Sequence record: NC_048077.1
Length of the DNA stretch: 64,000 bases
Direction: 5' to 3' (one strand)
Every line of letters starts with the position of its first letter. The first letter of the stretch is position 1. This document shows, one piece after another, positions 45,958 to 53,734 of this stretch. The notes beneath the pieces are model-generated. The model saw only the letters and a program-made list of their open reading frames with translations, was not told the DNA's origin and searched no databases. The translations under genes were made by a program, and so were the position numbers.

Positions 45958-46881
45958 TTAAACATTTACAGTTTCAGCGATGCGATTCGCAATAAAATCA
46001 GGAACCGCATTCATCGTAAGACCATTGCGTTTTGCCAACATGATAAAGGCTTCCGCATATTTCAATTGCTGACTCCCAACACCACCAAATTGACGAGCGT
46101 TGAGCAGGCGGCGCGACAATTCTGACACGACTGTTTGACGTGTACGGAAACCGGAGTTAATGCTTCGCAGCATTTGAAAATACTTGTGAACATCGGATTT
46201 GATAGAGAAAGTTTTGATGCCACTGAAATCTTTTCGAATAGCAGCATGGAGCAGAACTAAGAAAGGATATAAATCTTCTTTCTGTCTGGCTTCCTTTTCT
46301 TTTTCAATGTCCTTGATAAAATCAGGACGGTTATCAGGTTCCGGAGTTTCCTTGCCATTCAATGTGGAAGTGATTTCGTTAAAAAGCGAAATGCGTTTGG
46401 TCGGACGGCGTGACAGCATATCTTTCTTGCTGCCGTAAAAGTAAACCGGAATATTTCTTTTGCGAGCCTGCAAAGCAATGCCGCGAAAATACATCCCATT
46501 ACTTTTAATTCGCGCTTCTTCTTTCGTTCCAACGTTGCAGTGAATCTCTTTAACGATACTGATATCAATGTCCGGCTTGTCGCTGATAATGCGTTCTTCG
46601 GATTCAGAGTAATCAGCACCGTTCTGCCAGAAATCGACAGGCACAACTTTAAAGCGTGACCGGATTTTATTTGCATCCAAAACAAACAAAACTTCCGATC
46701 CGCCATTAGTTCTTATCGCGAAAATATTACTTAGCGTGCGGGTAGTGGAAAGGAAGAAGAGTCTGTTTTGAGAGAACTCTTCTTCCGCATCGCTTCCGGA
46801 GGCAATGCTCAAATGAAATTTTCCACTTCCCACAATACTCAGCGCGTTTTTCGGCGAAGTAAAGTGGAAGAGTGTATTCAT
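45958..46881 (-). CDS. ADP-ribosyltransferase-fold-like protein, paralog 2
   Basis: LFHFT..KNALSI..G, FLSTTR, ESEER motifs; paralog of the adjacent gene. Confidence 0.55.
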   Translation of the reverse strand: MNTLFHFTSPKNALSIVGSGKFHLSIASGSDAEEEFSQNRLFFLSTTRTLSNIFAIRTNGGSEVLFVLDANKIRSRFKVVPVDFWQNGADYSESEERIISDKPDIDISIVKEIHCNVGTKEEARIKSNGMYFRGIALQARKRNIPVYFYGSKKDMLSRRPTKRISLFNEITSTLNGKETPEPDNRPDFIKDIEKEKEARQKEDLYPFLVLLHAAIRKDFSGIKTFSIKSDVHKYFQMLRSINSGFRTRQTVVSELSRRLLNARQFGGVGSQQLKYAEAFIMLAKRNGLTMNAVPDFIANRIAETVNV

Positions 46882-47720
46882 ATATCTTTAATTGCCTCAT
46901 AAATAAAACGAGGAATACCCGCGATTGTAATGCCTTGCTGTTTCGCAAGAATCGCGAGAGCACGCGGAGTTTTCACACGCGAATCATCACTAGGATAATT
47001 GCGAGAGTTTCCGATATCATTACGCAGACCAGTTGCCAGTTCGTTGTAACGATATTGATCGCCGTAGCTTCCACGAATTTTATCGTAGATGTAAGCAACT
47101 TCACTATCACCCTGCTTTAAAAGTTTGGGGATAGTTTTATTGATCGCTGCGTGCATCAATTGAAGCCACGGCATCACGTAGTCTTTACGGCTACGCGGAA
47201 TATAACCGCCACGAATGATTTTAGATTTCGCCAGAATGCGCGGATCGTTCAGAGGCACACGGCGCTCTTTACGCATCGAGATCATATCTTTCTGGTTATT
47301 GTATGCGAACACGCTAATCTTTCGACGAGCGCACGCCAGCACCAGATCACGCAGATATTTTCCGTCATCGTTACGATCCAAGTTAATGTGAACCGCAATA
47401 ATAAACGGCGAAGCCGGAATACTAGGCTTGTCAGTAATCAAACGTTCCTCAGCTTCGGAATATTTGTGATTCGCCCAATAGTCCATCGGTTCAAGTTTGT
47501 AACGGGATTCAAGGGCGCGTCCATCCAGTTCAAACATTACGCCGTGTGCCTTATCAGCAAACGCATTGCTTCGTGTGCGAGTAAGAGAAAGATAAAACAA
47601 TTTTCCCTTATTGATAACCTCGTCAGATTCAGCAGCGTCAGCCATACTCAAAAAGAAACGGTTGTCAGTAACAATCTGCGCCGCTTTGTGAGTTTGAGTG
47701 AAGTGATATAAAGGTTTCAT
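46878..47720 (-). CDS. ADP-ribosyltransferase-fold-like protein, paralog 1
   Basis: LYHFT, YLSLTR, EAEER motifs. Confidence 0.55.
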   Translation of the reverse strand: MKPLYHFTQTHKAAQIVTDNRFFLSMADAAESDEVINKGKLFYLSLTRTRSNAFADKAHGVMFELDGRALESRYKLEPMDYWANHKYSEAEERLITDKPSIPASPFIIAVHINLDRNDDGKYLRDLVLACARRKISVFAYNNQKDMISMRKERRVPLNDPRILAKSKIIRGGYIPRSRKDYVMPWLQLMHAAINKTIPKLLKQGDSEVAYIYDKIRGSYGDQYRYNELATGLRNDIGNSRNYPSDDSRVKTPRALAILAKQQGITIAGIPRFIYEAIKDI

Positions 47721-49651
47721 CAGCTTACAATAGGTTCCTTGTTGACTTCAAACTCTTCTGACATATCGTACACGCGAGCGAATAGAGTTGGTTTCATATC
47801 CTTCACATGTTCTGCAATATCGAAAAGACTTTGTTTGCGGGCTTTATTGATTCGCACCTGACGAACTTCGTCCGGGCTATTAGTGATATCGTAAAGCGTG
47901 TAAACAATAATGCTGTCCGAAGATTTATGAGGCGCTTCGCGAAGAATTACCCATTCACGTTTGAGTTTTTCATCGGCTTTAAACACCACAATATCGCCTG
48001 CTTCCGGATTCGCCAATTTCTCTGGCGTGCCTTTATTTTCTGTAGCTTGTTTTTTAGCAAGTTCAGCGGCCTCCTGTTCAGCGTTGAGAACATCCTCATC
48101 GACTTCATCGGAATCAGTTTCATCAATATCAGCAGCGTCGTCTTCGGAATCCGCTTCTTCTTCATCCTCGGAATCTTCTTCATCCTCAGAATCAGTGTCT
48201 TCCTCAGAATCAGTGTCTTCCTCAGAATCAGTGTCTTCGTCCGGATCTTCTTCCTCTTCGTCATCCGTTTCTTCTTCTGAATCGGTATCATCCTCTTCAT
48301 CAGTGTCTTCGTCCGGATCTTCTTCCTCTTCGTCATCCGTTTCTTCGTCGTCCGTTTCCTCAGAATCGTCTTCTGATTCAGTATCATCCTCAGAATCTTC
48401 TTCCTCTTCCGGAGCAGGTTTCGCTACCTTAGATTTTTTCTTAACTTTCGATGGCGGCGCTTCTTCCTCTTCGTCTTCTGGTTCTTCTTCAACATCAGAC
48501 AAATCGAAATCACTTTCTACGGAATCAGAATCATCGCCGTCGCCAAACATGGAACCAATTACAGAATCAATTCCCATGTTGTCACTTGCGAATGGACGTG
48601 CAGAAAGAATATCTTCAAGCGGAGCAAACATATCGTCTTCCTCTGCCTGTTCTTCTTCAACTACATCCATATCCAGAACTTCGTCGAGATCTTCTTCGAG
48701 TTCTTCTTCTGCCAGAATAGATTTAATCTGGTTGCGCAGACGCACGGTAGGAATCGCATTCTCTTCCGTGTCAAACGTGCGAGGTTTAGCAGAAGGCGCT
48801 TCCATTTCACCACGTTTGATTTTCTCTTTCATTTCGTCGTAGCGCTCTTGTTCTGCGCGAGAATTTTCTTTTTGTGCGCGTTTGGCTTCACGGGCAGAAA
48901 TTTCTTTAGCAAGTTTTTCCGCACGCTGTTCAAGACGTGCAGCCTCACGCTGTTCAACCTGCGTGCGATGTTTCATTTTCTTGCTATCGGCGCGGTACGC
49001 TTTAACGTCTGCATCAGACAGCGTGCCATTAGGCCAATCCTGAATCGGCATAACGAGAGTTTCCGTAACCACTTTATCGTAGTTTTCCGGAGTGAGTTTT
49101 AAATACATCCCTTTCTCGTTAATAATAACGCCGCCTTTCGCATCGCGAATGTAGCGCATACCTATCATTTCGTTCTTTTTCAGAATCTCTTTGCCTTTAG
49201 TGTGCGTAACGGTCAAAGACATTTCCGGAACGATACGCCATTGATAGTTGCTAAAATCAATGCCGTTTTTATATTCGTTTGGAACAGTGCGCGGAGCAAA
49301 TCGAGCATTGTCGAAATTCTTACGCTGCAACTGACGTTCCGTAGTTTTAACGCCGCGTGCTTTTGCGCGTCCTTCGCGCTGAACAATATCAGGCAGCTTA
49401 CGCAATTTTGTTGCACGCTCTAACAACTGATTCCCGTTCTTCTTATCGAGCGGGAAATTGATATGAGGCATATCAGGAAAAATAAGAGTGAAACGAGATC
49501 CGCTTTTAAGAGACTTAACGCCAAAGATATCGCCCTCGCGAATCATGCGTTTGTGAGTACGTTCCGAAACTTCTTTGCCGCGTTGCCCTGTATACTTAAA
49601 CCAGTTGTATTCGCTAACCGCTTCGTCATATGTAGCCGACTGAGAGAGCAT
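47720..49651 (-). CDS. Head-associated protein with paralogous N-terminal domain and ~200-aa acidic disordered tract
   Basis: MLSQSA start; WFKYTG domain; D/E tract; C-terminal SH3-like segment. Confidence 0.8.
   Translation of the reverse strand: MLSQSATYDEAVSEYNWFKYTGQRGKEVSERTHKRMIREGDIFGVKSLKSGSRFTLIFPDMPHINFPLDKKNGNQLLERATKLRKLPDIVQREGRAKARGVKTTERQLQRKNFDNARFAPRTVPNEYKNGIDFSNYQWRIVPEMSLTVTHTKGKEILKKNEMIGMRYIRDAKGGVIINEKGMYLKLTPENYDKVVTETLVMPIQDWPNGTLSDADVKAYRADSKKMKHRTQVEQREAARLEQRAEKLAKEISAREAKRAQKENSRAEQERYDEMKEKIKRGEMEAPSAKPRTFDTEENAIPTVRLRNQIKSILAEEELEEDLDEVLDMDVVEEEQAEEDDMFAPLEDILSARPFASDNMGIDSVIGSMFGDGDDSDSVESDFDLSDVEEEPEDEEEEAPPSKVKKKSKVAKPAPEEEEDSEDDTESEDDSEETDDEETDDEEEEDPDEDTDEEDDTDSEEETDDEEEEDPDEDTDSEEDTDSEEDTDSEDEEDSEDEEEADSEDDAADIDETDSDEVDEDVLNAEQEAAELAKKQATENKGTPEKLANPEAGDIVVFKADEKLKREWVILREAPHKSSDSIIVYTLYDITNSPDEVRQVRINKARKQSLFDIAEHVKDMKPTLFARVYDMSEEFEVNKEPIVS
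48184..48346. repeat. Tandem 18-bp repeat x3 plus ~46-bp duplication
   Basis: CCTCAGAATCAGTGTCTT at 48184, 48202 and 48220; CAGTGTCTTCGTCCGGATCTTCTTCCTCTTCGTCATCCGTTTCTTC at ~48229 and 48301. Confidence 0.85.
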
Positions 49652-53694: not shown

Positions 53695-53719
53695 AACAAA
53701 AAATGGGGCCGAAGCCCCA
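53695..53719 (-). terminator. Rho-independent terminator (UUCG loop)
   Basis: Minus-strand TGGGGCTTCGGCCCCA-TTTTTTGTTTC. Confidence 0.85.
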
Positions 53720-53734
53720 CGATTTTACACGCGA

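Follow-up and report, generated by a model that had tools for sequence, protein, structure and literature searches.

In the conflict between phages and their hosts, both parties rely on ADP-ribosylation as a central weapon. DarT1 and DarT2 are guanine- and thymine-directed ADP-ribosyltransferases (ARTs) of single-stranded DNA, and ARTs of the DarT type, which modify nucleic acids, have been described chiefly as toxins of bacteria. The related enzyme Tpt1 belongs to the H-H-h clade, which has no catalytic glutamate, and arginine-specific ARTs typically carry an ExE motif. To our knowledge, the phage ARTs studied by experiment come down essentially to Alt and Mod of T4. Here, we describe two adjacent genes located at positions 45958-47720 of a 64,000-nucleotide stretch of sequence record NC_048077.1 (referred to as the window). 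Their products, P0001 and P0002, are best read from sequence and predicted structure as paralogous, catalytically intact NAD+-dependent mono-ADP-ribosyltransferases that would serve the phage in attack, as effectors directed at a host macromolecule and lacking an antitoxin, a reading to which we assign a probability of roughly 0.65. The family that they represent is a large one among phages, and its members probably modify host molecules.

The window sequence is identical (100%) to that of the Dickeya jumbo phage vB_DsoM_JA11/JA33, genus Salmondvirus, with a genome of 255,356 bp. Positions 45958-47720 comprise exactly two open reading frames, both on the minus strand and both annotated as 'hypothetical protein'. 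The original prediction, made from the DNA letters, had described them as tandem paralogs with common ART-like motifs, and this description was confirmed: an end-to-end alignment of the two proteins gave 31% identity (E 3e-44), and all quoted motifs are present, with L[YF]HFT, [YF]LS[LT]TR and E[AS]EER[LI]I in both, their coordinates having been checked. The features of the pair are as follows:

45958..46881, minus strand: P0001 gene, 307 amino acids (JA11 gp137, YP_009813582), ART-fold domain followed by a helical C-terminal domain
46878..47720, minus strand: P0002 gene, 280 amino acids (YP_009813583), paralog of P0001
46387..46881, minus strand: P0001 residues 1-165, predicted ART-fold catalytic domain (VIA-align and Foldseek)
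47256..47720, minus strand: P0002 residues 1-155, predicted ART-fold catalytic domain (VIA-align; invariant columns)
45961..46323, minus strand: P0001 residues 187-307, predicted all-helical C-terminal domain (AlphaFold2 helices 187-305)
46881..47174, minus strand: P0002 residues 183-280, predicted helical C-terminal domain, homologous to its P0001 counterpart
46858..46872, minus strand: P0001 strand-1 motif LFHFT (His6 invariant, Thr8 96%)
46738..46755, minus strand: P0001 strand-2 motif FLSTTR (Ser45 invariant, Arg48 97%)
46591..46608, minus strand: P0001 motif SESEER (invariant Glu93-x-Glu95 and Arg97; strand 5, residues 95-100, begins at Glu95)
47697..47711, minus strand: P0002 motif LYHFT (His6)
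47577..47594, minus strand: P0002 motif YLSLTR (Ser45)
47442..47459, minus strand: P0002 motif SEAEER (Glu89-x-Glu91, Arg93)

The assignment to the ART superfamily is carried by the predicted structures. AlphaFold2 models built with deep alignments reached a predicted local distance difference test score (pLDDT) of 91.7 and a predicted template-modelling score (pTM) of 0.87 for P0001, and 92.1 and 0.86, respectively, for P0002. In the Foldseek search against the PDB, the top matches all belonged to the ART superfamily, with Tpt1 at E 7e-4, DarT from three organisms at E ~1e-2, then KptA and CC0527, followed by Scabin, TreTu, SopF and pierisin. VIA-align, an all-against-all comparison independent of Foldseek, whose typical Z-score without a true match (7-8) was exceeded here, placed the NAD lobe of Tpt1 (7yw4) first for P0001 (Z 11.9, root-mean-square deviation 2.2 Å, 107 residues aligned), followed by four DarT structures (Z 9.1-10.1, 135-141 residues aligned). 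For P0002, the corresponding values were Z 10.8 for 7yw4 and Z 8.2-9.4 for the four DarT structures. CC0527, Scabin, TreTu and pertussis toxin came after DarT; rows 1-22 of the P0001 list were all members of the ART superfamily, and the P0002 list was the same in kind. In both models, residues 1 to ~160 resembled ARTs only. The ART assignment stands: the predicted split beta-sheet of the ART fold, whose absence would have contradicted the original prediction, is present in the models, for both of which the two search methods put ARTs on top.

In the P0001 model, His6 lies in strand 1 (residues 3-8), Ser45 in strand 2 (42-47), and Glu95 is the first residue of strand 5 (95-100); Glu93 precedes it by two residues, in the loop equivalent to the ADP-ribosylating turn-turn (ARTT) loop with the conserved D-Y-W. 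The predicted N-terminal domains of both proteins thus have an ART fold with an H/S/E triad on strands 1, 2 and 5, which agrees with the ART-like pair centred on H, S-x-T and E-x-E that had been proposed from the letters. The C-terminal halves, described at the same time as helical and divergent, are indeed predicted to be helical and have diverged, but remain recognisable homologs of each other. No convincing structural relative was found for the P0001 C-terminal domain (best Z 4.0-4.6; nothing usable in the Atlas search), and the structural search with the P0002 C-terminal domain likewise gave no usable relative. Both domains are basic (isoelectric point 9.6-9.9).

Conservation is concentrated on the putative catalytic residues. 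H6, S45, E93, E95 and R97 (P0001 numbering) are invariant in 99 diverse homologs with a mean column identity of 20%, and the catalytic columns are likewise invariant in the P0002 alignment of 100 diverse homologs and in 53 multidomain relatives. Within the 99-member alignment, T8, R48, Y84 and Y149 are conserved to at least 90%, and a frequency count gave 90% for W85 and 89% for H114. The family signatures read [LIVM]-[YF]-H-x-T, [YF]-[YF]-L-S-[TL]-[TSA]-R, P-V-D-Y-W and S-E-x-E-[DE]-R. As judged from these alignments, the conservation of the motifs far exceeds chance.

Neither P0001 nor P0002 had a significant match in Pfam, PHROGs, NCBIfam, PADLOC or the PDB sequences, and 99 diverse relatives were also without a match in PHROGs. 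A word-based protein search returned close relatives only, in two clades, one per paralog. A profile search of 1.84 billion representative proteins yielded 1,986 matches at E ≤ 1e-3, including 1,273 at E ≤ 1e-10, which corresponds to a family of about 2,000 clusters at 50% identity. Most of these matches cover the N-terminal ~160 residues only, and many others cover the whole two-domain protein. Among 50,697 deposited phage genomes, the family was present in only about 37 records, belonging to a few lineages of large phages (JA11-like, Lu11/HRDY3, SCTP-2, T4-like Vibrio, Rhizobium, Alishewanella and Sen-NF). No characterisation of these proteins was found in a literature search; they do not appear in the main texts of PMC7824862 and PMC9503650, the supplements of which may list them as ARTs. 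By sequence and model, P0001 and P0002 represent a new, large family inside a known superfamily and a previously unannotated type of predicted enzyme, and thousands of 'hypothetical proteins' become annotatable.

Members of the family repeatedly occur side by side in large phages. The JA11 genome contains no copies other than P0001 and P0002, and phage Sen-NF carries the same ART pair. Three diverged copies are located within 4 kb in Pseudomonas phage Lu11 (gp206, gp208 and gp212; L010:1743-5852), and four within 5.4 kb in Alishewanella phage Slickus01 (L012:4947-10331). According to the tree, the JA11/Sen-NF duplication is older than the split of these two phages (joint clade support 96/97), and the Alishewanella and Lu11/HRDY3 expansions are separate from the JA11 pair. 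A stand-alone family ART of 197 amino acids was observed in Vibrio phage 6E35.1a (MW824377; L011:3731-5546), directly downstream of rnlB, in a lineage of T4-like Vibrio phages comprising 18 records.

P0001 and P0002 are themselves stand-alone two-domain proteins. Both the IMG/VR loci and the representative library also contain long polypeptides in which the domain is embedded, together with cytidylyltransferase-like, DUF5661, Cu/Zn superoxide dismutase, NTP_transf_2 (Pol-beta-type nucleotidyltransferase), GNAT, MPTase-PolyVal, ART-PolyVal, LysM/SLT and amidoligase domains. ART-PolyVal co-occurs with the family domain in polypeptides of 1,300-1,700 amino acids, and a single protein holds up to four ExE-[DE]-R motifs. 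Nudix fusions were detected in four representatives, in which the Nudix part precedes the ART domain twice and follows it twice, and by context tie the domain to NAD/ADP-ribose chemistry. These relatives show the pattern of effector modules in polyvalent proteins, an architecture that has been read as effectors delivered with the DNA (PMC5512222). One polyvalent-type protein of 1,140 amino acids (IMG/VR L041:5201-8623 and L084:5742-9164, both plus strand) ends in an ART domain of the family and also contains a cytidylyltransferase-like domain, DUF5661 and a full Cu/Zn superoxide dismutase (E 2e-45); a phage-delivered superoxide dismutase beside an ART is unusual.

Within the superfamily, the sequence signals are weak, yet concordant in direction. 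Positions 1-47 of the family profile align with residues 2-49 of E. coli DarT1 (LFHFT...NLTSIL) in HMMER, so that the DarT-type N-terminal start noticed in the letters was recovered, at E 0.35 only. Weak Pfam matches were obtained to Tox-ART-HYD1 in 4 and to PARP in 1 of the 99 members, and in a multi-copy protein the PARP and HYD1 matches coincide with the domain starts. The Atlas placed the family by features next to a viral 'DarT domain-containing' cluster, with Arr-ms at 0.86, and by structure next to a DUF2971 cluster (template-modelling scores 0.42/0.51). Against Pfam at E ≤ 10, P0001 and P0002 gave no match, DarT (PF14487) included. Of the 46 Pfam families touched by the 99 members at E ≤ 0.1, DUF2971 (PF11185) was not one of the 25 with the most matches. 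ART-PolyVal (PF18760) did not match the P0001/P0002-type domain, and in P0033 and P0048 it matched another region of the protein; the two families are therefore distinct, being separate domains in the same polypeptides.

The closest resemblance is to the DarT and Tpt1 enzymes. With DarT1/DarT2 (PF14487; 8baq, 7omv, 7yk3), the family has in common the ART fold (Z 8.2-10.1 over 129-141 residues) and the strand-1/helix-1 start L-[YF]-H-F-T ... N-x-x-S-I-L. At the position of the Tyr in the H-Y-E set of DarT2, DarT1 carries a conserved Ser, giving an H-S-E set, and it uses the aromatic F18 right after the strand-1 His (PMC11543638); F7 of the P0001/P0002 family corresponds to this residue. The H-S-E combination, which the original prediction had called a hybrid, is thus not unprecedented, because it already occurs in DarT1. 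The present family differs from DarT in its ExE-[DE]-R and S-x-x-R signatures, in its extra helical C-terminal domain and in having no DarG or NADAR partner in the JA11 genome; it is phage-borne and read as offensive, whereas DarT is the toxin of a host toxin-antitoxin system. Tpt1/KptA (PF01885; 7yw4) is the best structural match (Z 11.9/10.8, root-mean-square deviation 2.2-2.3 Å, 107 residues) and also has L-Y-H-x-T on strand 1. However, only Tpt1 residues 112-230 are matched, its N-terminal RNA lobe with the Arg-His-Arg-Arg tetrad being absent here, and the P0001/P0002 ART domain begins at residue 1, unlike that of the two-lobe Tpt1.

Other relatives are more distant. The DUF2971/Tox-ART-HYD1/AbiGi group is linked by the sub-threshold HYD1 matches and by its ExE; DUF2971, which has recently been placed near DarT, AbiGi and HYD1, conserves a Tyr and ExE, whereas its His is poorly conserved (PMC12522546). 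In that family the motif II Tyr is strict, whereas here His and Ser are both invariant and motif II is a Ser. ART-PolyVal, of the Tox-ART-HYD2 clade, is likewise a module of polyvalent proteins of giant phages and conjugative elements, sometimes in several copies, but has an H-Y-D set (PMC5512222), in contrast to the Ser and Glu of the present family. The parallel to T4 Alt/ModA/ModB that had been drawn from the letters extends to function only, as an analogy: several paralogous ARTs per phage, a late or virion-linked position and no antitoxin. The T4 enzymes belong to the R-S-E clade with Arg on strand 1, where His is invariant here, and have no detectable sequence relation to the family. Protein-targeting R-S-E toxins reached only Z 4-6 against the two models. 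Since the combination of H, S and ExE-[DE]-R fits none of the definitions above and the corresponding models miss it, we regard the family of P0001 and P0002 as distinct and place it among the His-type, DarT/Tpt1-like ARTs.

The remainder of the JA11 genome was searched for enzymes of related chemistry. A canonical KptA/Tpt1 RNA 2'-phosphotransferase of 180 amino acids, with LYHGT and VHLS motifs, is encoded at genome positions 214,099-214,581 on the plus strand (PF01885, E 1.2e-42; L086:1483-2025), so that the role of Tpt1 is already filled. The phage thus possesses three ART-fold genes and an NAD-dependent ligase. An hhalign comparison of the family with this KptA aligned 22 columns (P 4e-4), which span only the first strand, with its 'LYHGT', and the first helix. 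No Macro, NADAR or ADP-ribosylglycohydrolase (ARH) gene was found in the 255-kb genome, which extends to the entire phage the earlier remark that no macrodomain antitoxin is visible near the pair.

From the computed fold and conservation, we infer a catalytic mechanism of the usual ART kind. His6 on strand 1 and Ser45/Arg48 on strand 2 would hold NAD+, and Glu95 at the start of strand 5 would stabilise the oxocarbenium intermediate. Glu93 and Arg97, with the D-Y-W loop, may position the acceptor and assist the transfer of ADP-ribose, and the basic, all-helical C-terminal domain probably selects the target. The proteins would then act offensively on a host macromolecule, with no partner antitoxin. 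The pair, its neighbouring virion-module genes and the ligase gene form a co-oriented, tightly packed string within the block of virion genes, which continues downstream into head genes and upstream into sheath and tail genes. In PMC9503650, such a position inside a virion block is treated as suggestive of packaging in the head; by its criteria, the position of the genes suggests late expression and possible packaging in the virion.

Regarding the target, a nucleic acid, as for DarT, is slightly favoured over a protein, because the enzymes with the nearest structures are all modifiers of nucleic acids, the triad resembles that of DarT1 and the domains are basic; one structural relative in BFVD, named as an ASCH-domain protein, was counted in the same direction. 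Expressed as a division of our expectation, somewhat less than half falls on nucleic acid, about a third on protein in the manner of Alt/Mod, and a fifth on other substrates (NAD+ itself or small molecules). That the two proteins have different targets, as the original prediction had proposed with host RNA polymerase, the ribosome, defence proteins or DNA in mind, is a conjecture. A more specific proposal, which we put forward only tentatively, is that the family forms a new and very large clade of DarT-like enzymes, used by phages in attack and without an antitoxin, that ADP-ribosylate the DNA or RNA of the host or the DNA of the phage. Its members would, on the same tentative footing, be stand-alone virion proteins or modules of polyvalent proteins, the specificity of which, for sequence or target, may be tuned by the variable helical domain and by paralog expansion.

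Modification of proteins is the alternative that survives best, and we regard it as possible at well below even odds. Here, the pair would be ARTs like Alt, ModA and ModB, of which one copy may be packaged and the other made after infection. The location of the genes in the virion module, the presence of several paralogs per phage, paralleling the three ARTs of T4, and the ExE motif, as in arginine-specific ARTs, all agree with this explanation, and ARTs in polyvalent proteins or fused to GNAT or peptidase domains were predicted to be protein modifiers (PMC5512222). The strand-1 residue, however, is a His, whereas Alt and Mod, as R-S-E enzymes, have an Arg there, and the low Z-scores of the protein-targeting toxins stand against those of the nucleic-acid modifiers.

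Less likely is an NAD+ glycohydrolase or an enzyme of small molecules and ADP-ribose signals, consuming NAD+ or making or destroying immune signals derived from ADP-ribose. According to PMC9503650, the ART fold includes NADases and small-molecule transferases, as illustrated by Arr and by the products of Tpt1. The Nudix fusions would fit the processing of soluble ADP-ribose derivatives, and the Atlas features match Arr-ms, although Arr reached only Z 3.8-4.1 in structure. Furthermore, the conserved, basic and variable C-terminal domain and the lineage-specific expansion of paralogs suggest macromolecular targets.

A Tpt1/KptA-like end-healing enzyme, taking part in nucleic-acid repair alongside the neighbouring NAD-dependent ligase, or alongside Rnl2 in the Vibrio phage, appears very improbable and was rejected. 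The Tpt1 NAD lobe is the best structural match, and a ligase gene lies near the family genes in JA11, Sen-NF and RHEph12, with rnlB adjoining in Vibrio phage 6E35.1a. However, the RNA lobe is absent, the hhalign match spans only 22 columns, the H-H-h clade does not have the ExE that is invariant here, and the phage has its own canonical KptA elsewhere. No family-wide link to a ligase was seen either, as none of 70 IMG/VR loci carries a homolog of LigA, Rnl2, gp135, gp139 or gp140 within 8 kb.

Just as improbable is a catalytically dead ART-fold scaffold serving as a structural or binding protein of the virion. Pseudo-ARTs exist, the TASOR pseudo-PARP is among the low-scoring structural matches, and the genes lie in the virion module; the full catalytic set, however, is invariant in about 190 sequences and in both paralogs, and on that count this explanation was rejected. 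Least probable of all is a DarT-type toxin of a toxin-antitoxin or superinfection-exclusion module, rejected despite the DarT-like N-terminus and fold, since the DarT Pfam model is silent across the phage genome at E ≤ 1, Macro, NADAR and ARH are missing, no small neighbour is conserved over 50 locus groups, and both members of the pair are the same type of enzyme.

Several results weigh against the reading of P0001 and P0002 as offensive ARTs with a leaning towards nucleic acids. No curated ART model is significant on either protein, and the roles given to individual residues derive from the order of secondary-structure elements and from sequence alignments of 22-47 residues, rather than from superposing active sites. 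Judged by the ExE motif and by the co-fusions with GNAT or peptidase domains, a protein target is at least as plausible as a nucleic acid. Across the 70 IMG/VR loci (50 dereplicated groups), no conserved neighbour or antitoxin was found, and the commonest neighbouring families reach 7 of 50 groups (GH19 lysin, ClpB-like ATPase, dCMP deaminase and unknowns being the commonest). Finally, the JA11 paper contains no expression or virion-proteome data on P0001 and P0002.

If the enzymes are active, they would constitute a major unexplored class of phage effectors, for which JA11 on Dickeya solani offers a cultivable test system. Should the target be DNA or RNA, they would be the offensive counterpart of DarT, and nucleic-acid ADP-ribosylation would be a widespread strategy of phage attack and not of bacterial defence alone.

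The genes surrounding the pair are densely arranged. The end of the P0002 gene and the beginning of the P0001 gene have 4 nucleotides in common (ATGA), and the stop of the upstream gene, which encodes 643 amino acids, overlaps the start of P0002 by 1 nucleotide. The NAD-dependent DNA ligase gene starts 23 nucleotides after P0001 and is preceded by a GAGGGA ribosome-binding site. The ligase also adjoins the ART genes in Sen-NF and is 2 kb away in RHEph12. These neighbourhoods, like that of rnlB, are lineage-specific, given their absence near the 70 IMG/VR loci, and a functional link between the pair and the adjacent ligase was rejected on the same count.

Scans of the locus for promoters and terminators gave no signal above shuffle level. 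The strongest terminator-like hairpin of the region (53703-53720, minus strand; 7 pairs, 5 of them G-C, then a T-run) is located just upstream of a 1,320-amino-acid gene and may mark the start of a transcription unit containing the ART pair and the ligase. The 643-amino-acid protein (47720-49651, minus strand) belongs to phrog_35607, of unknown function, and has at its centre about 200 extremely acidic, repetitive residues rich in Asp, Glu, Ser and Thr. Open reading frames of about 600-630 amino acids stand beside the ART genes in Sen-NF, Lu11 and HRDY3 as well, and are likened to this gene by size and position only.

DNA nearly identical to positions 45958-47720 was also detected in sequencing runs, where the matches are contigs, mostly labelled metagenomic, which cannot show expression. 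Smaller shares were found in samples from soil, freshwater and food fermentation, and 73-83% of the sampled words were present in 2025 wastewater metagenome runs of a single study, an occurrence that fits the origin of the phage from a sewage outflow.

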